A stretch of DNA of 61,724 bases, counting the filler, from Choristocarpus tenellus KU-1152 (taxonomy: Eukaryota > Protista > Phaeophyceae): the NCBI GenBank assembly GCA_964200185.2. It is 11 parts of 11 records of this genome, joined end to end, with 100 filler letters (N's around TTAATTAATTAA, not from the genome) between each part and the next. Parts side by side here need not be neighbours in the genome. Positions count along the whole stretch, not along the records: positions 35,435 to 39,946 come from CAXNAD020014214.1; positions 40,047 to 42,803 come from CAXNAD020025010.1; positions 42,904 to 46,209 come from CAXNAD020020907.1; 8 more parts are not named here. One strand, 5' to 3'. The notes under the pieces are model-generated. The model was not told the origin of the DNA. It saw only the letters and a list, made by a program, of their open reading frames with translations, and did not search any database. The position numbers and the translations under genes were made by a program. Positions 563 through 43,137 of the stretch are shown here, one piece after another (the stretch's first letter is position 1; each line of letters begins with the position of its first letter).

Positions 563-2914
563 TTTAGGCTCTCATTGAACAAAAATTTGGTAGGTAATCC
601 CTGGCCGTTATCATCTATGGAAGATTGTTTGGGTACATTAGGGGGAGAAAAATACTTGTCATGTCTTGATGTTCAGTCAGCCTACTGGCAACAACCCATC
701 ACCGACGCCAGCGAACGCCCAGAAACTGCCTTTGTCACACCGGATGGAAAATGCGAATTCAAAAGGCTACCCTTTGGTGTTGCTAACACACTATGGATAT
801 ACCAACGCTTCATGTTAGAAAACGTTTCAGCTCTAGGACCGAGTATGGACTTACTCATTTATCTTGATGACATTGTACTAGCCTCCCCAACGTGGAACCA
901 TCGTATCCAACTCTTTGGGAGCGTATTGTCGTTACTGCAGCAAGTAGGAATAACCCTTAAACCATCTAAAGTCCAATTTGGCTCAAAATCAATTTATTGT
1001 CTGGGGCATGAAGTCAGCCCCAGTGGTATTGCTGTGTCACCAGATCGAACCCAGGCTATTACCACTCTGAAAGCCCCTAAATCTGTGAAAGAATGACAAT
1101 ACTTTCTAGGTTCCATGGACTTTGTTAGGAAATACATTCCCCATTTGGCTACAATAACTGAACCCCTGGTGTCACTTACAAGGAAACCACAAAAAAGTCT
1201 GGAAGAGACAAAAGTCAATCTCAACTATGGGGACAATCACAACAAAATTCTCTTATTGATTGTAAACTTCTATTAACTATGGCGTGTTAAGCTTTCCAGA
1301 TTTTACTCAGGAGTTTCACGTGGACGCTAGTGATGTTGACATGGGAGCTTTCTTGGCACATAAAAATGAGGACAATAATTTCCAAATTGTAGCCTACCAT
1401 GGTGCTCTTTTAAAGTCAACCCAAAGACAATATTCAGCATCTCAGAAAGAATGTCTGGGCGTCATCCTTGCCGTAACACATTAGCGCCCATATATTTGGG
1501 GTAAGCACTTTACAGTAGTAAGTGATCATTCGGCATTATGTTGGTTACATACAATGCAAGATACTTCCAATATGTTGACCAGGCGAGCCTTAGCCTTACA
1601 AGCTTTTGATTTCACAATTTTACATAAACCGGGACATTTACACTACATTTCGGATATGTTATCCCGGACACTGTTGGAGGAATTTATGTTGGATGAAACA
1701 CCACTTCCACTAGCCCCACTGTGCCACAATATAGGCCAAATAGAGTCGGATGTCTCCACACCCAAGATTTATCCTGCATATGATCTATCGGTGGATAAAC
1801 TAGGTGAAATTACAGAGTACGAAACGATATGGAACTATTCACTAGCGCCGTTAATGTTTTCCCAACAGTGGATCCTGAAGTACTATTCAAAGCTCAACAA
1901 ACCCAATATGGAGAATATTTCAAATATCTGGCTACTCCAGAAAAAGCCTTTTTACCAAGAAACGAAACAATGTATACCGTGTCTTACTTTTTCACCCAAG
2001 AAATGGAAGGCAAACAGAAGTTATACAAATCGTATCAACCTGGTCACCTTCGAAAGAATGATAAATTCTGAGATCAATTGGTGATACTCACTGAGGTACA
2101 AGGTTTAATACTCCATGCCCTTCATGAACATAAGGTCTCAGGACACCTTTCATTCAAGCACACTTTTGACCAGATTCGTGACCGTTTTTGGTGGCCCACT
2201 TTACATAAAGATGTTCGAGCTTGGCGTGAAAGATGCCAATCATGCCAGAGCCGCAAGACAACAACCCCTTCTAAGCTATCAAACCCTCCAGGGCATATGC
2301 CAGTAACACGCCCATTTCAGAGAGTGGCAATTGATTTGGTGAAATACAAAAATCAATCAGAGAAAAATAAATACTTACGTCTTGTCTGCTGTCGACCATT
2401 TAACGAGGTTTGCTTTGCTCAGTGCTATCCGTGACAAATGAGAGGCAACTATAGCAAAAACATTAAAAGAACGAGTGTTTTCTATTTTAAGTGCCCCGGA
2501 AACCTTATACTCAGACCAGGGTAAAGAATTTGAAAATAATCTGATCCTGGAACTCGAAAAGATCTATGGATACAAGAAAACAAAAGCAACATCATATCGA
2601 CCTCAAGGCAATAGCATTCTTGAAAGGATTCATAAGACAATGCATGGCATGCTAACTATGCATTCCCATATGAAGCAATTGGATTGGGCGTCATTATCGC
2701 CTTTTGTGCAACTGGCTCAATACCGCTTAGCTCACAATACCGCTTATAATACCACTGTACAAGAAGCTCCCTTTTATTTTAAGTTTGGGAGACGTCCCAC
2801 ATTACCAATCGATATCATTTTGGGAGAACCAGAGGCCATGCCTATTTCTACCCAGGAGTAGAGTAAGCAAACAGTGGATACTTTTCAAGTGGCATATGAA
2901 CTGGCTAGACAGAA

Positions 2915-6043: not shown

Positions 6044-7313
6044 GAGTCAAAGTATCTTAGAGGGTAGAGTTGTGTCCGTTTGGGGGCAAGAATCCAATGT
6101 TGCAATGTTGATGTAATTTTGGCTATCGTGTTTGTTAGGAAGTGTCAGTATCCTTGTTCCGGACACTGCCTTGACCGGTCAACTGTCCATACAACTCCTC
6201 GATTTCCTCTACTGAAAAGGGGACTCGGAAAGAGTGAGTCGAATATTATACAGAAAAGAACTTGAGTGTTTGCATTGAATCCAATAGCCGGGAGACACAA
6301 GAAAAGACAGGGAGTAGATATACGTGACTCTGGGTGGGGAGTGCGGGCAACCAAGTTGGTATTCACAGCGACGAGATCAAGAACTTGTAGGGCTAAGGTT
6401 TCCAATGATTCCACAATCAATTTCTGGACCTTCCATCCGCCTGCTCACTTCCGAATTTCCTTCAACTGTTTTAGAAGGATGAGAAGGGATCATGCAGAGG
6501 TTAGGAATCAGTCTTGGAGTGTGGAATAGTAAGGAAACTCAAGATAAGACCATAGGAGCAAGGCTGATACTCGTCCAGGATCGGGGGAGCATTGAGAATG
6601 GCAACAACTGGGTCACCGGAAATAGTAATACAATGGGAAGGAAGATGAAAGCTGGAGACGTTTTTTGGTATACGTTAGGGCCAACAAAATAGACCCGGTA
6701 GTATGATATCGAAAAGTTTGGCAGAGAGTAGGAAGGATTGGGCGTAGCCAATGTAGGAGGTGCAACTGTGACTCAAAGGGGGAGGTCAAATTGATCAGCT
6801 TTGAAGTCTTCTAGCTCAAAGGTAAGTATTGAAGCGGATGGTGGAGGGGTGTTCTTGGATGAATATGGAGTGTTGTAGAGCGGTGTTGAGTTGGGTAGTG
6901 TGGTAGAAAATGGTGTAGTTTTTGTAGAAAGTGGTGGAAAGTGCTGTGGAGGAAGGTGAGTGCGGTAGAAAGTGGCGGAGGAAGGTGGAGTGGATTCGCA
7001 AATATTGGCCGCATTGGTTGGCGACTGGAAAACAGAGATGAAGGTTGGTCGCACTGCTTGATTATCGGATACGCGGGATTGGTCACATTGATGGTGACTG
7101 GATATGCGGAATGTGGCTGCACTGTCGGGTGAACGGAAATAAGTGGTGAAGATTGGTCGCGCTTGTGAGTGAAAGCACCTTTTCATAACGTATACATTTT
7201 ACCTACTCCAAAACATCTTGGGGTAGATAAAATGTCACAAAAAAAACGTGGGAAGCCAAGCCTCAAACGGACAAACAGGGCAAAACTCGTTACCCTCTGA
7301 GATACTTTCACTC
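6044..7313 (+). mobile_element. Composite MITE family A carrying a ~1-kb internal insert (6167-7175), TSD TGGA
   Basis: Left half 6044-6166 and right half 7176-7313 join into a full consensus copy; TGGA on both outer flanks. Confidence 0.85.
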
Positions 7314-9460
7314 TGGACTTAAATGTGATGCATCTTGCGATATGCTCTGTGAAGAGGCTGTCTGTATACTACGAACTACAGGACTTTTCTGTGCTGCAGT
7401 CCAGGATAGTGATGTATGCTCTGAGTAGGCTTGCGGGTGTGTTAAGTCTCCATGTACTCCGTCCAGCTATGTGTAGAGATACAATTATTGTAGAATTAAT
7501 TGGAATTCAGAAATGGGGTCAACATCTTCCAATATTTTTTGTTAGTTTGAAATACTAGAGTTTGGTGTACGAGGAAAACGTGAAAGAGACTCAAGTCTAA
7601 TTCTTAAGTCAACTATTATTGTGTGTTATGTACTCATCAAATCTGTTGAACATCTACCAAATGTGTGAGACCTCCTGTAAACCACGCAAAGTGCAACGAT
7701 AGGTCATGATCAGATACTGCACAGGGCAGTATGCATGTGATGTGGATACTTGCCAATCAAAGAATCATTACTAGTTGATGGTGCTGAACTACATATATGA
7801 ATCATGGACTAAGCAGCCCATGTTTCTACACTGCCCATGCAGAGTGCAACGGTAAGTTGCGGTATTTTACCATGCAGATTGGTGTACTACAATGTCGGTA
7901 ATTGTACACTAGGGAACATTACTAGTGGACAGATCAACTGTCGACACTAGTTGATGAAACTGTACTCTGGATCTAGGAATGACAGAGGGGGAGTAGTCTA
8001 TGTTCCAATGTTTTCTAGAGGGGGTGGATAGATACTATATATGAAGGGAAAAGAAGAAATTGCACATTACTGAGGTGTAGGGATCAAGCATGTAAGAGGG
8101 TGTTGAAAGGGACACCCAAATAAGAGCAATAAAGAACATATTTGCCCATCTGAGGCACGAATACGAGCACTGCAATTCAAATGGGGAATGCAGACCACAC
8201 TCCCAATATGTACAGCATAGGGAAACAGTTATGCGGTACTCTTCTTAGTCAATTTTTCCTTGTTGATTATTTTGTGTTTGCTGGAAGTGGAGGATGAGTG
8301 AGTGTCCTCTATTCTTGCCACCTCTACTACTAGGTCTGGGGGAGACCATTGCAGGTACGGATACCCTGAGCACCAAACCACTCTGTTCTATGTAGTCCTT
8401 CAAAGAGTACTGGCTTGCATCCCGAGGTGATTTGCGTTTCACATCGTTTGATTGGGGATCTACATCATCAGTCCAGGGCCTATCTCTTGTACCACAGGTG
8501 TAGGTTCTTTGAACCAGGAACCAGGCAGTGAGGAATGAACTCCACTCATGGCATACAGTAAGATTCCAACCTCATTTCTTCAACGTTTACACCAGTTGAT
8601 CTCCTCCATCCACCGCCCACACCTTGCTTACGCAATTCTTGATCCAAGCAAATCACCTTGGATGGACTTGAGCTACTTAATGAATTTATGACCATGCGAT
8701 GTAAAGAATATAGTTATAATCCGACCAATCATCTGTCCCGAGAGGGTGTAGTAGAGAGCGATCACAGGCTGAAATATAGTTTTGATTACTTTTTTTGTCA
8801 TGGAAGACAGAGCTGACTGTTTGACCCTAAAGTTGGAAAAAATGTAGTACACTCCCTTAATATATAGTATATTCTTGCTCAGTGATTACAGTGGAGAATC
8901 CGAAGCTGACATTATGTCTATGCTATTACTTGCGAACATGTTGGGCATGACGTTTTAGTTGCCCTCCTCTGAAGTCCCAAAGTTTTAACTGCTTGCTTCA
9001 AATAATGTGGCAGTTTGGCGAAGGAAATATTTACGAATATCCAATCTTGCATCTCATCATGGCTAATTATATCTTCCTGTATTTTGTCATTATCTATTTA
9101 TCAATACATGCTACGTGATCCTCACTTATCCTATTGTTTTCTTCCTCCATGCATTGATGGTATGGCAAACTGAAGAGAGAAACCTGAGCTGAGCAGAGAT
9201 TGGATTGATTAAGGAGGCTCTCTAATCTATTATTACATACAAAACACACTGTAGAAGGTTGGTAATTATAATGCTATGTGCACGATCCTGCTATGCCTCC
9301 AACCTTGGTTTAGGCTTCCACAAGTGGGCGAAGAGGTAGTGAAGCATCCCAAGAACCTGAAAAACCCCTCATACAATTGTGGGAAGATGATACGGTTCTC
9401 TTCATGAATTATGGTTGATAACCTTAGACTTTTTTGGTGTTACTTCAGATGTGGAAGAAA

Positions 9461-9531: not shown

Positions 9532-10636
9532 CCCTCTTCCGTTCTTGTGATATCTACTCGTCCTCGTTTCTCATCATCCAAGGACGGATTTACCTAGTTG
9601 GAGAGCGGAAAAGTAGTACTAGTACAAGAGTAATGAAACTCATCTTTGTATGCTTGGATGATGGGAGTAAAAGAGGCACATCGGAAAAACATGGAAACAC
9701 CAAAATTAAACATGGCCACAAATATAAATACTATGTAATATTCATCATTAAGACAATTCAACTTTTCATTTGCTGGTTGTTTCGGTAGAATATCATTATC
9801 AGTTGCAACAAAACATTCCTCCTTTTATATTTTCTTGCACTATCCACATGAGATTGATAATATATATATATTTCCTCTTACCAACGTATCCTATATGTAG
9901 GTGAACTTATGGTTTATAGGGCGATAGAGTAAAGTACAAAGAATAATATAGGACAATAATCAACAATCTTTTAAACAATGTTTCTAACTGATATTTTTAC
10001 ACATATTCACTTCTTAGAAAAAAGGCATCTGTAATGGTTACTACTCTGTAAAATCAAAAAAACAAAAATTATGATACTATTGATTAATGGTTGTAGTGTA
10101 AAAACACGTACACAAACAACGTGGGTCCCCATCCCCAGACTCTTTGATAGACTGTTTGGAAATGACATATTCAAGATAAATACTGACGGGTTGTTTCCAC
10201 TTCGTAGGTTGAGGGGTGGTAGGGGATAGGAATAGAGGAGGACCAACACAGGGAGCGGAGGAATCACTCATACAGGGCATGAGGTAGAAATGGGGAAATC
10301 GGAAGGAATGGCACTTTGTTGATCGACACCTACTGTGACTGCCCCCAACACGTTGGTCCTGTGGAAGGACGGTGGGGCATCTTCTGGCTTCTAGGTTTGC
10401 TTCGTTCCCTGTGAACGTAGTCAAGATTTCGGAAGCAAAACAACGGGACCTTCGGAGGAAAGGGAAAGGGAAGATTGGCTGTTTGTAGAAAGGAGGAGGG
10501 GCTTGTACTCTTGTTTGGTTCTGGGGAAGGAGATTAGGTACCTGTCTTGGTATTGCGATCGTTCTTGTTCCATCCCGTGCCTCCTCCTGCAGGCATTGCT
10601 TGGCTCTCTCTCAGGTGTTGCTAGAGAGGGATCGCC

Positions 10637-20929: not shown

Positions 20930-22460
20930 AATGGTAGCTTCTGTCAGAATAGTATCATCATTGTCATCCCAAGAAAGTGGACCCGCACCTTCGACACAAA
21001 TGGAAGCTGGAGGCTAAGGAGACATGGGATATGATACGATCGATAACAAGCAAGAACTGGAGGTCAAGAAGGTACTTTGGATACCTGATAGGCCATGCCG
21101 AATATTGAGCAGTGGGACCCTGGGACAAGATGACAGAGTTAATCGAGGCAATGCAGCTCGAGCTGCAATCCTGAGCCTGAGCCTGAGTCTGAGCCACAAG
21201 AATCTACCTATGGACCTAGAGCAGTGATCACAACACTTGTCCCTGAAGGGGGCACGCCCATCGATTGGAGACCCCAAGATTCTTGCTTACGGAATGAGAA
21301 AAGCAATTGCTGTATCCGCCACTAGGGGAGCAGGACATTAGCAAGAGCAGTAACTAAGCCTCCACCAGAAAGGAAAGGAGGACCTAACCGTGGGGAGCCT
21401 GGGAGCACTCTAACCGCTGGGACCATAAACTCAGGGAAGAGAACACAGAAGGTCAGCGGAAGAGGCGGCCAAGGTACAACTGGTCAACGTACGGACCATA
21501 TTACAACAAGATCCCCTACCAGAGACGAGATCAGGACCAACAGAAGATGTTTAAACTGTGGACTGATCAAGCATATTGGTCCTTGTTCTTTTGAAGGAAT
21601 ATGTACAACTGTGGAGGTAACGAAACCTTCAGATCGTTTGTCGGGCGAGGAGAGTGACACCGTCTTAACAAGCGAAGGAATTAGCTGGACCCAGAAAAGA
21701 AAACCAGAGGAAGCTTGTCAGCAACGGACTGCCTGTACAAGGCTTGTAAGTCCGGAAAGTAAATAAGATCTACTCCAGACCATCAAGAACCATCTTCCAT
21801 ATCAGAGGCACCCTGGTGAGGAAGGTTGTTAGCAAAGGACTTCACTCAACAAGAGGATGTACAAGACATTCAGTTATGATAGGCTTCAAGCCTGGGGGAT
21901 ATGATTCCCAGCGAAACCTGTGGAATAAAAGAACAGTGTGATACATGAAAAACAGATTGGCGATGTGAGTGTACGAATGACGAGGAAGAACTACCTAGGC
22001 AACGTCTATACCATGGCAGTCAAAAATCACTCGTTTACGACTATAGGTGGATGATGTGGCGGTCAGAGACCACTCATTGTAGAACAATGAAGGATGATGG
22101 TTACCTCGGAGCCACAGATGCCATTGTACCCATGGAGACAACGAGGCTAAGACGAAAACCCCGCGGATGCTGCATGAAGATCACAAACCCAAGTGGAACA
22201 AGAAAATAATCCAGGCAGGCGTAGGAAGCTACAAAGAATCCTATGTGTTGAGGTGAACAATGAGTATTCCCTCCAGTTTGAAGAGAGGCGGTAGGACCTC
22301 TATGTTACAGGCGCCCCTCAGAACTCACCTCCACAGGGTGTACAACTCAAATCCAATTAACAGATTAATGCACGTCAGCTCAGCAGAACACTCTCAGGTG
22401 AATCAAGTAGCTCAAGGAAAGTAAGTGTATCGATAACAGCTAAGAGAGAAAGAAACTGAA
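20930..22460 (+). mobile_element. Highly degraded LTR-retrotransposon gag-like remnant
   Basis: Zinc-knuckle-like RRCLNCGLIKHIGPC at ~21542; purine-rich coding-like composition with many stops. Confidence 0.4.
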
Positions 22461-39896: not shown

Positions 39897-40323
39897 GGCC
39901 TCCGGGCCGTTTTTTTTAGAGCTCAGTTTTTTTTTTTTTTGTTTTTNNNNNNNNNNNNNNNNNNNNNNNNNNNNNNNNNNNNNNNNNNNNTTAATTAATT
40001 AANNNNNNNNNNNNNNNNNNNNNNNNNNNNNNNNNNNNNNNNNNNNCTGGGGGAGGGTGGGGGGGGGAGGGGGTATGATACTCAGCGGCCTGGCCTACCT
40101 AGTGCTGAAAGAAAAAACTGTTCACTTCGTCTGTGATTTTGCACACACACATACTACATGGTCACCCGAAACCAAGCATTTGGTTGACAGGGTTGCTAAA
40201 CGCGGGATAACAATCTCAACTTAGGTTGAACAGGAGGACACAGAGAGATCTTCACAACAGCTGTAACCCAACAAGAGGGGGAGTAGAGCGCCACCATCCC
40301 ACCAACGTTGACAACTCCCTCAC

Positions 40324-41038
40324 CTTTTTGTACATTTTGCGGATCTCTGCTAGTGACAATTCTTTTTTCTCGTCTGGCGCTTGATAGCTTCTTCGAGCTC
40401 GTGCTGAAAATATACCTTATCGTACAGCGTGCGCTCAACCACACTCTCGGTCGCGTCGTTGAATGCTATAAGCGTGGCGGTGCAGTGGGCGAACGGGGCA
40501 AGGGGTAGGTGGGAAGGGGTCGCGGGACACACGTGGCAGGCAGTAGTGAGCAACATGTTGCTACTGACAGAAAGACCACGAGGGATAAAAAAGATCAACA
40601 ACGAAAAGATCAACAACGGGCTGACTGATAATGAACCAAACAAAGGAAATACGGCAACAACTTGGTAGATCAGAAGAGTCATCAGGCGATCATGGAACAA
40701 TGACAACACTCAAATTACTTAGTTGCTTAGCTGATTAGGAGAGTCAGGCGATCATGGAACAACGATAACACTCCATCACCCACCATTTGAGATTAGCCTC
40801 TCTTCTGCTTGGTTGAACTCCATGTAGACCTGCATCATGAAAGCGCGTTCGGGATCAAACTCTCTCTTCAACACCGTTATTCTATGGTTTCCGTCCAGTG
40901 TTCGTCCTTGAACGGCAAGCGCAGTGTCAGCGGTGAGCTGGTCCCCGTTGCCTAAGCAGTCTCGTTGGATGATGGTGGACGGAGCAAACTGCTCGAGCCA
41001 GCCTTTTTCACGGATGGACTTGCTGCCGCACGCAAGGC
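40324..41038 (-). pseudogene. Spliced ParB/Sulfiredoxin-like domain gene (exons 41038-40784 and 40465-40324), probably transposon-borne; one frameshift in an A-run
   Basis: Manual translation GLACGSKSIREKGWLEQFAPSTII...RTLDGNHRITVLKREF...VYMEFNQAEERLISN|AFNDATESVVERTLYDKVYF...ELSLAEIRKMYKK; phase-1 GT-AG intron; fits the ParB pattern SI..xG...P..V / DGxHR / xN. Confidence 0.75.
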
Positions 41039-41104
41039 CTGCTGTTTTATTTCATTTGGTCGGTCGGTCCCCAAAGAACTCAGTTTCTCTTTCCGTTGAT
41101 AATT

Positions 41105-41895
41105 GTGTTATAAAAAATACGAATATCGAACAGTATATGATTTCATATTTAAAACAGATAGAGAGTATCAGTTTTTTGTGACCTTTTCGTTTCGGAACAT
41201 TTCAAACATATTAGATCAAGGAAGTATGTGGTTTGTATTTTTATTTGTTGATATTAAGAATAGAATATTTTTATTATTTCATAAAAACCCTAATGCATGT
41301 GTTTTGACTGTTCAAGGGTTTCGGGTGGTCCGACGGATCGCCCGAAACTCAAAAACCGCTTTTTGTCGACATTTGTATTTTTTTAAATACAAAAGTCGAC
41401 AAAAAGCGGTTTCAGTATTTTTAAAAATTATAGGGTACCAGTTTTTTTGTAACCTTTTAGTTTCGGAATATTGGAAACGTATAAGACCAATAAAGTACGT
41501 GCTTTGTATTTTTTTAAATTGTAAGAACGGATATAATCGGATTTACTATTCCTAAAAACCCTAATGCACGTGTTTTGGCAGTTCAAGGGTTTCGGGTGAT
41601 CCGACGGATCGCCCGAAACTCAAAAACCGCTTTTTGTCGACATTTGTACTTTTAAAAATATATGTCGAACAATATAAGATTTTGTACTTAAAACAATTAG
41701 AGGGTGTCAGTTTTTTGTGACCTTTTGTTTTCGGAACATTGGAAACGTACAAGATCAATAAAGTATGTGCTTTGTATTTTATAAAATTGAAATTACGAAC
41801 GTAATCGAATTTTTAATTTCTAAAAACCATAATGCACGTATTTTCCGGATCATGGATCTCAGGGTGGTCCGACGGATCGCCCGAAGCTCAAACAT
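41105..41895. repeat. Three tandem AT-rich ~270-bp units, each with a 35-bp GC-rich palindrome
   Basis: GGGTTTCGGGTGRTCCGACGGATCGCCCGAAACTC at 41316, 41587 and (variant) ~41854; flanking blocks repeat with the same period. Confidence 0.92.
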
Positions 41896-42133
41896 CGTTC
41901 ATACACCCGGCTTCGAATTCAATTCTATTGTGCCCAAGACCGACTGTTGCCTGAGACCAGATTAGAATCTAGTTTTTATTTCATCACAGCAAGAATATAT
42001 GCGTTTTCCAGAACACGGATTTTATTTTGGTCCGATGGGTCTCTTCAAATTCAAACATCATACGCCTGGCTTTGAATTCAATTCACTCCTAGACCTTTTC
42101 ACTGCCCAAGACCGCCGGTTGCCCGAAAACACC

Positions 42134-42610
42134 ATGACAGTTGCTCCCACAGCAAGGGGGTGGCTTTTGTCGCCTGCGCCGCCCCCTGTGTTGCCCCCTT
42201 ATCAGCCCGCCAACAATGATGCGCTGGAGCTTTCTACCATTGACGCTTCAGCGACCGGCGCGAAGCTTCGCTGAGAATGGGCTGAACCCATCCTGGTCAA
42301 CGAACAGGGTGACTGCTGCAAGCGCTTAGCCTGTGTGAAGAAAGTTCGCGGCAGATAGCGAGTCCTTCCTTGCCCGCACATTGGCGAAAGAGCAGGATAT
42401 CATCCAGGCGTGTGAGAACCGCCGCGATCGCAAGCACTTCGTTGGTGACCGTGTACTTATCATTAAGTTGGGGCCTGGAGGCGGATCTATGCTCACGGCC
42501 GGCATTCCTGTTTGTACGCAGTTTTTCAAGGCATCGTTCGGAATATCCAATCATGCCATCGACGCTTGCAAAGGTACACCTAATGCAAGAGCATCCTCCG
42601 GCGTGGAGAG
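42134..42610 (+). pseudogene. First exon of a Sola/DUF7869-type transposase (one stop, one frameshift)
   Basis: ATG at 42134; DCCKRLAC and IPVCTQFFKASFGIS (VCxxFFxxxxGIS, typical of the Sola-type N-terminus); donor AG|gtggg. Confidence 0.7.
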
Positions 42611-43137
42611 GTGGGTTTGATGTATGTACACAATGTTATTTGTACTCGGTATTGTTTTGATGTGCGACAAACTTGTTGGGAACGGCAAAAAGATTCCTAC
42701 CAAGATCTTGACAGTTCTACGGTCTGCTATCGAGGCGAGGGAAAGGGGGGGGTTTGTGGGAGAAGGACGGAAGACTAAATTCAAGGGACGAGGAGAGGAG
42801 AGGNNNNNNNNNNNNNNNNNNNNNNNNNNNNNNNNNNNNNNNNNNNNTTAATTAATTAANNNNNNNNNNNNNNNNNNNNNNNNNNNNNNNNNNNNNNNNN
42901 NNNCCCCTCCCCCTCCCCCCCCCCCACACCCAACAAACCCCCCCCCCCCCCCCCCCCCCCCACCCCCACCAACCCCCCCCCCCCCCCCCCCCCCTGCAAA
43001 CATATTTGAATTTTAAATGCTAAGGACAAAACACCTAAGCACTATCAATACACACACACTCTCTCAAAAACCAAACCAGTCCCCCCCCCCCTCCCCCCCC
43101 TCCTCCCCTCCCCTCCCACCAACATTCAACCACAAAC

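Follow-up and report, generated by a model that had tools for sequence, protein, structure and literature searches.

A ParB-like gene and a Sola1 transposase gene, with palindromes between them, in a transposon of the brown alga Choristocarpus tenellus

Sola1-1_Ec32 of Ectocarpus (Genome Biol, Sept 2025; PMC12477816) is a transposon of 21.5 kb with 282-bp terminal inverted repeats (TIRs), the termini AACCG..CGGTT and a 4-bp target site duplication (TSD), and on the strand opposite to its transposase it carries an accessory gene that combines a ParB-like domain with an N4C/N6A DNA methyltransferase. With reference to Iyer et al. (2011) and Petroll et al. (2025), its authors suggested that proteins of this kind bind to the transposon that encodes them and modify it epigenetically (PMC12477816). 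In this study, we compared with this and other known systems a piece of the genome of the brown alga Choristocarpus tenellus (contig CAXNAD020025010.1, assembly GCA_964200185.2), which lies at positions 40047-42803 of the window, i.e. the whole analysed stretch of 61,724 nucleotides. This piece very probably represents the middle of a degenerate copy of a Sola1 transposon, a high-copy, cut-and-paste element with a ParB-like accessory gene.

The likeness to the Ectocarpus element is close. An opposite-strand accessory gene with an N-terminal ParB-like domain inside a Sola1 element is also found here, and the N-terminal layout of the Sola1-1_Ec32 transposase (CCxLxC ... DRKxFV ... GSMxAAGxPVC ... 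CKGT..A.AS) is that of the transposase exon in our piece. Catalytic motifs could be compared in a related element from Pylaiella littoralis (on a 229-kb contig, here locus L009); they match those of Sola1-1_Ec32, and the element is comparable in size (19.2 kb) and termini (TAACAG...). On the other hand, the present elements form a Sola1 lineage of their own. In the L009 accessory gene (annotated product of 1368 aa), the search for a methyltransferase was negative: there was no Pfam domain on record, none in open stretches of at least 80 aa and no match in the ESM Atlas, and neither a DPPY-type nor an FxGxG-type motif was found in any plausible exon of this gene.

A second described system is PAG3 of the Plavaka (KDZ) elements in the red alga Bostrychia moritziana, which contains a ParB-like domain and a 2-oxoglutarate (2OG) oxygenase domain (Petroll et al., 2025; bioRxiv 10.1101/2025.02.11.637652). 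PAG3 adjoins tandem arrays of inverted repeats and was also hypothesized to bind and modify its own transposon (bioRxiv 10.1101/2025.02.11.637652). It shares with our elements the ParB-like N-terminus and the adjacent inverted-repeat arrays (in the piece, in loci L001 and L006 of the same C. tenellus assembly, and as four 60-bp repeats in L009), but differs in its transposase (Plavaka/KDZ versus Sola1) and its host (red versus brown alga). A 2OG-dependent oxygenase domain was not found in the L009 accessory gene by Pfam, motif regular expressions or the ESM Atlas. The preliminary description of this locus had supposed that no such system had been described, which was mistaken: the arrangement is already in print for Sola1-1_Ec32 (PMC12477816), and ParB-like genes beside inverted-repeat arrays, with the same binding hypothesis, for Plavaka elements (bioRxiv 10.1101/2025.02.11.637652). 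The sole new detail is a core palindrome between the two genes; the portion of the text of the Sola1-1_Ec32 paper considered here makes no mention of an intergenic palindrome (PMC12477816).

Divergent genes of one Sola1 element

The ParB-like gene (minus strand) and the transposase gene (plus strand) belong to one element. The piece is collinear along its whole length, at 90-92% identity, with L001, a second C. tenellus contig of assembly GCA_964200185.2. The divergent pair recurs in L005, a Logan contig unrelated to that of the piece, where a transposase exon (1103-588, minus strand) and the ParB-like gene (1775-2134, plus strand) show 55-64% protein identity to the piece and the DNA between them is not alignable. 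It recurs again in L009, with a ParB-like exon at 7275-7793 (minus strand) and the transposase at 9941 (plus strand), at 25-38% protein identity. In the latter, TIRs of 194 bp (94% identity) at 223 and 19389 enclose both genes; they start sharply at TAACAGCCG, and a third independent end of this kind is present in locus L008. The proposal of a two-gene DNA transposon with divergent genes was thus borne out.

Several observations weigh against this picture. A ParB-like gene without a nearby transposase exon was observed in L004 (a 1.14-Mb ENA contig) and L006, and the reverse in L008, all three in fragmentary or rearranged contexts. Shared TIRs around both genes, which had been suggested as a check together with TSDs, were found in L009, but a clean TSD was not (flanks TTTT versus TTAC/ATTA); the TSD of L009 is unconfirmed because its flanks are fragments of other copies. 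Finally, the piece includes neither the catalytic DDD/DDE core nor the termini of the element, and therefore the Sola1 assignment of this copy rests on exon 1 homology and on its relatives.

It might be argued that the two genes were brought together by chance, through a nested insertion or deletion around 41040-41100. There is indeed a real 282-bp deletion at 41039/41040, and the single genes in L004, L006 and L008 could be read in the same way. However, the same divergent order in L001, L005 and, within common TIRs, L009, as well as the same arrangement published for Ectocarpus (PMC12477816), make a chance adjacency extremely improbable. At the junction near 41100, named beforehand as a possible chance insertion or deletion, the 5' end of the ParB-like gene has indeed been deleted, but no nested insertion mimics the linkage.

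The copy in the piece is dead, with both genes broken. Compared with L001 (1876-2157), the 282 missing bp comprise the ATG of the ParB-like gene (MSSLL...), the first strands of its domain and upstream sequence, so that the start and the first ~33 codons are gone. The L001 open reading frame (ORF) at 1975-2421 runs unbroken across this gap, and a contig from X3 (one of the public runs X1, X2 and X3, whose contig pieces were mapped onto the piece) departs from our sequence at 41039. In exon 2 of the same gene, one base is missing in a T/A run at ~40362-40369, which results in a two-frame translation; the homologue P0004 and L001 are in frame here, and in other copies there is an additional T behind 40369. 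Transposase exon 1 is interrupted by a TGA stop at 42272-42274; near 42341 it has one base too many, which is absent from about half of the other copies, and L001 is open across the same stretch. Neither frameshift is a shared feature of the other copies from the public runs. At ~650-670 of L001, the conserved start methionine (MxVAPTARGW in the piece, P0007 and P0017) reads L. Judging from this sequence, the L001 transposase copy may also be non-functional.

As the preliminary description had proposed, the element is multicopy. Dispersed copies were identified in L001, L002 and L006 (all from assembly GCA_964200185.2; 70-92% identity), and contig pieces at 85-99% identity (4367 from X1 and 3207 from X2) covered every bin. 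With thousands of contig pieces spread over the full piece in each of two runs, the family is considered high-copy.

The plus-strand exon had been taken for the first exon of a Sola-type transposase, and homology searches agreed. Its motifs follow the order CCxxLxC ... DRKxFV ... GSMxAAGxPVC ... CKGTP, and E-values together with this motif order establish homology to the Sola1 N-terminus: the intact homologue P0007 (162 aa) matched at E 4e-31, and the Ec32-type protein P0031 at E 1e-14 with about 38% identity. An exhaustive HMMER search with exon 1 yielded 68 relatives, every one a short ORF call. Exon 1 of L001 matched that of L009 at E 1e-30. In L009, the next transposase exon lies 1.5 kb downstream of exon 1, and the later exons match Pfam DUF7869 (E 5e-22) and contain the motifs MMxDxANQ, DNxxxENKNN and VGHTHIxIDQIFS, as in the curated Sola1-1_Ec32 transposase, whose core motifs read MMDGANQ, DNTVAENKNN and MVGHTHIQIDQIFS (PMC12477816 supplement). 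Literature searches on DUF7869 and PF25273 returned nothing. On sequence grounds, the transposase is classified as Sola-type, more precisely Sola1.

Other features were noticed in the loci with rearranged contexts. A solo ParB-like first-exon fragment (58% identical) is located at 9986-10507 of L004, adjoining an RVT_1 retroelement ORF, and within 10 kb of it neither later ParB-like exons nor a transposase was observed. Upstream of the L006 array, a foldback structure resembling a miniature inverted-repeat transposable element (MITE) is present at 320-850 (82-nt inverted arms, 88% complementarity), part of which recurs at 3464-3600 of L002; possibly, this structure was inserted there as a nested element and displaced the transposase exon of L006. 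At 4917-7714 of L008, just upstream of a 5'-truncated transposase copy, there are two ORFs (283 and 408 aa) that have neither introns nor Pfam matches and may belong to another mobile element. A long low-complexity stretch in the transposase intron of L009 (13135-16495; PNPTQP-like in several frames), common to L008 19237-21021, looks like a minisatellite or nested repeat.

The ParB-like gene and its predicted fold

The minus-strand spliced gene with ParB/Srx motifs, which had been recognized at the outset, was searched exon by exon and was confirmed by its exons, its DGNHR motif, its predicted fold and a junction contig. This contig, from X3, fuses exons 1 and 2 precisely at the predicted junction (EERLIAN/AFN), joining 40466 to 40792 with 7 replaced letters. 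Intron 1 is real because the exons are joined at the predicted junction, and some copy of the ParB-like gene is probably transcribed. The intron contains a 62-bp direct repeat and a 15-bp tandem of two units. The exact 15-bp unit is found twice at 40589-40618, and a 30-nt direct repeat, 62 bp apart, at 40682-40773; one 62-bp unit is absent from some copies, in which 40681 is joined to 40744.

The exon 1 remnant corresponds approximately to residues 62-146 of the intact L001 ORF (83-89% identity), which provides an uninterrupted first exon of 148 codons. Homologues of the ParB-like protein include P0001-P0015, several of them from assembly GCA_964200185.2, and are known solely as short, unannotated predictions. 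To model the fold, we used the L001 ORF, which is 83% identical to the remnant in the piece, at the head of a 13-row alignment. The AlphaFold model had a predicted local distance difference test (pLDDT) score of 66 (70-89 in the core), and the top 48 Foldseek matches in the PDB were all Srx, ParB, Noc, KorB, PadC or SbnI. By VIA-align, the model superimposed on the N-domains of ParB, Noc and PadC with Z 9.3-9.6 and a root mean square deviation (rmsd) of 2.2-2.5 A over 87-92 residues, the best being Noc (Z 9.6, rmsd 2.4 A over 91 residues), and ParB-CDP scored Z 9.5. The N-terminus is thus predicted by modelling to be a ParB/Srx fold of the DGxHR type. Failure to recover such a fold had been named beforehand as evidence against the proposed system; AlphaFold, Foldseek and VIA-align all recovered it.

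Some results speak against a ParB-like assignment. Pfam ParB_N (PF02195) gave no match at E up to 10 for the exon of the piece, the L001 ORF, P0001 or P0002, and phmmer and profile searches of PDB sequences gave chance matches alone. In addition, the strand-helix turn equivalent to the GERR box of ParB reads LDGNHRI, i.e. GNHR, in which the Glu and the first Arg are replaced; CTP-clamp behaviour is therefore not to be assumed. By its sequence, the GNHR box resembles the DGxHR branch of the ParB/Srx superfamily, and weak TIGR03187 DGQHR and PHROG ParB matches agree with a ParB-like protein. An Atlas lead at 0.92 was also obtained.

Beyond this domain, exons 2 and 3 read ...SLAEIRKMYKK / VGVTTPAKTTLQNW, a helix-turn-helix (HTH)-like sequence pattern. 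The third exon (exon C, HTH-like) is beyond the edge of the piece and is found in L002 (1490-1711) and L005 (2925-3152); homologues of it were detected in L002, L005 and L009 only. No Pfam match was obtained when the exon pieces of the window copy and their intact relatives were scanned.

The bacterial ParB/Noc/KorB clamps share with the C. tenellus protein, as far as its sequence and fold model describe it, the N-domain fold, an HTH-like segment after it and multicopy short palindromes near the gene. They differ in having GERR where GNHR is found here (cf. DndB and ParB-like nucleases), and the present gene is a spliced eukaryotic gene with no ParA partner here. Another group, likened here by its published description, comprises the ParB-HTH fused Dam-type methyltransferases of chlorophytes and chytrids, which are likewise eukaryotic, of prokaryotic or phage origin, and unite a ParB-type DNA-binding module with an activity that modifies DNA (Iyer et al., Bioessays 2015, PMC4738411; Iyer, Abhiman & Aravind 2011). 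In contrast to these, a methyltransferase domain was not detected in the present lineage, as judged from the L009 accessory gene.

The tandem array and its palindromes

Between the two genes, Tandem Repeats Finder reported an array of period 271 with 2.8 copies (score 914). Unit-by-unit alignment showed that the units are one-to-one orthologous between the piece and L001, so the triplication is older than these two copies. Unit number differs among copies, in which joints skip 269-275 or return 269. A motif scan located the core GGTCCGACGGATC at 41327, 41598 and 41866 and a fourth, degenerate one at 42029; 8 matches were obtained, versus 0.54 expected. The preliminary description of three ~270-bp repeats, each with a 35-bp palindrome, holds for the array but not for the palindromes, which are unequal: two are full, one is partial and one is a remnant. 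As DNA hairpins, palindromes 1 and 2 are strong (-12.3 kcal/mol, z -4.4, and -14.7 kcal/mol, z -5.8). Palindrome 3 is reduced to a 9-bp stem (-5.2 kcal/mol, z about 0) with 0 mismatches in its core, and the hairpin of the remnant at 42029 is not significant (z about 0).

A separate 60-bp palindrome at 41353-41412, also present in L001, has arms that are 96% complementary and forms a hairpin of -28.8 kcal/mol (z -11). Its AAACCG...CGGTTT arms resemble the AACCG..CGGTT termini of Sola1-1_Ec32; a nested miniature element is neither supported nor excluded by this likeness.

The core, generalized as GRTCCG-N(1-2)-CGGAYC, is confined to the intergenic region in the piece, L001, L006, L005 and L003, with observed counts of 2-3 per locus versus an expectation of 0.05-0.16 in shuffled sequences. 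The L006 copy, a more divergent one from C. tenellus, has repeats spaced ~270 bp apart and a palindrome at the same place in which stem letters have changed on both arms (TTCGCGGTCCGCGCGGATCGCGAA). The core occurs twice in the intergenic region of L005 and once in that of L003, where it forms a perfect palindrome of 20 nt, 176 bp upstream of the transposase ATG, and besides the core these two loci share no alignable intergenic DNA with the piece. Such conservation makes it likely, as far as sequence can indicate, that the core is some functional cis-element in a shared control region. Two results count against a general role. Neither L005 nor L009 has the 271-bp array, and therefore the array as such is lineage-specific; and in L011, with its short upstream sequence, the core was not found in the 218 bp that precede the start.

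A comparable though distinct feature is seen in L009, where four 60-bp tandem repeats (8033-8227), each with CTGTGACACAG, lie ~400 bp upstream of the ParB-like start. A separate palindrome with 19-nt arms is located at 9854-9892, ~50 bp upstream of the transposase exon, and both palindrome features recur in an inverted second copy at about 20992-21030.

An alternative explanation is that the array is an unrelated AT-rich satellite or MITE, which was inserted between the genes in the ancestor of the C. tenellus subfamilies and carried along, the palindromes having no role for the proteins of the element. The base composition would fit (GC content of 0.27-0.39 in the array versus about 0.5 in the flanks), as would the lack of the array in L005 and L009, the short inverted sequences that bound the units and the 60-bp palindrome where units 1 and 2 meet; fixed nested insertions are also frequent in giant brown-algal DNA transposons (PMC12477816). 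However, an inserted satellite accounts poorly for the core GRTCCG-N-CGGAYC in the intergenic regions of L005 and L003, where there is no array, or for the L006 palindrome, which was kept despite its changed stem letters. We regard this explanation as possible but doubtful.

The palindromes could also be sites for the N-terminal DNA-binding domain of the transposase, or for a host transcription factor at a bidirectional promoter, and not for the ParB-like protein. Binding to repeated motifs, subterminal or internal, is common among DNA transposases. The cores of L005 and L003 are 154-279 bp upstream of the transposase ATG, nearer to it than to the ParB-like start. On the other hand, the TIRs of L009, the sole relative with visible ends, contain neither the GRTCCG core nor CTGTGACACAG, and tandem inverted repeats are found beside ParB-like genes in the unrelated Plavaka elements as well, which points to a ParB-like partner as the common factor. 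A role restricted to the transposase or a host factor is thus considered unlikely.

The features of the piece are listed in Table 1. Both of its ends (40048-40073 and 42747-42803) are G-rich low-complexity runs, (TGGGGGAGGG)n-like, which may be the reason why the contig breaks there.

Table 1. Features of the C. tenellus piece, in window coordinates
Feature	Position	Strand	Description
ParB-like intron 2 start	40047-40323	-	Donor AAG/GTGAGG at 40324/40323; region collinear with L001, L002 and L006
ParB-like exon 2	40324-40465	-	Reads AFNDATESVVERTLYDKVYFQHELEEAIKRQTRKK / ELSLAEIRKMYKK; frame broken
ParB-like intron 1	40466-40783	-	318 nt, GT..AG, from sequence
ParB-like exon 1 remnant	40784-41039	-	DGNHR motif included; reads ...SKSIREKGWLEQFAPSTIIQRDCLGNGDQLTADTALAVQGRTLDGNHRITVLKREFDPERAFMMQVYMEFNQAEERLISN
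282-bp deletion breakpoint	41039/41040	.	blastn blocks versus L001 meet here
AT-rich tandem array	41126-41892	.	271 bp x 2.8, Tandem Repeats Finder
Palindrome 1	41316-41350	.	Core GGTCCG-A-CGGATC
60-bp near-perfect palindrome	41353-41412	.	Junction of units 1 and 2; 28-nt arms, AAACCGCTTTTTGTCGAC...
Palindrome 2	41587-41621	.	Core GATCCG-A-CGGATC
Palindrome 3, partial	41862-41882	.	Core kept, outer arms gone
Transposase upstream region	41893-42133	+	Two ~160-bp direct repeats; degenerate fourth core at 42029-42041
Sola1 transposase exon 1	42134-42610	+	From ATG at 42134 to donor AG/GTGGGT
Transposase intron 1 start	42611-42803	+	Donor AG/GTGGGT at 42610/42611; runs off the edge of the piece

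Proposed mechanism and implications

In our reading, an intact element encodes two divergently transcribed, intron-containing genes, one for the Sola1 transposase and one for an accessory protein that has a ParB/Srx N-domain, then a stretch resembling a helix-turn-helix and finally a long C-terminal part. The start codons are separated by a shared control region with, in this lineage, one to four core palindromes, which in C. tenellus are placed inside the ~270-bp tandem array. These palindromes may be bound by a dimeric protein that the element itself encodes, most likely the ParB-like protein or, alternatively, the N-terminal domain of the transposase. A protein bound at these sites would control the divergent promoters or mark the chromatin of the element, as has been proposed for the Ectocarpus and red-algal relatives.

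A more specific version of this mechanism is that the palindromes serve, in the manner of parS, as loading sites for a eukaryotic ParB homologue encoded by the transposon. This protein would bind as a dimer, possibly with a nucleotide cofactor, and from there spread along the element or bridge it, thereby controlling the divergent promoters or protecting the element against silencing by the host. We consider it improbable in this full form. If it were true, a eukaryotic nucleus would harbour a functioning ParB/parS-type system, apparently without the methyltransferase of Ectocarpus.

The element does not represent a new system, since its architecture and the self-binding hypothesis are both in print. 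What this locus adds to the recently described class of algal DNA transposons with ParB-like accessory genes is a host that is an early-branching brown alga and a second lineage of Sola1, together with a concrete, conserved candidate binding site, which is not given for Sola1 in those parts of the published accounts that were considered here.

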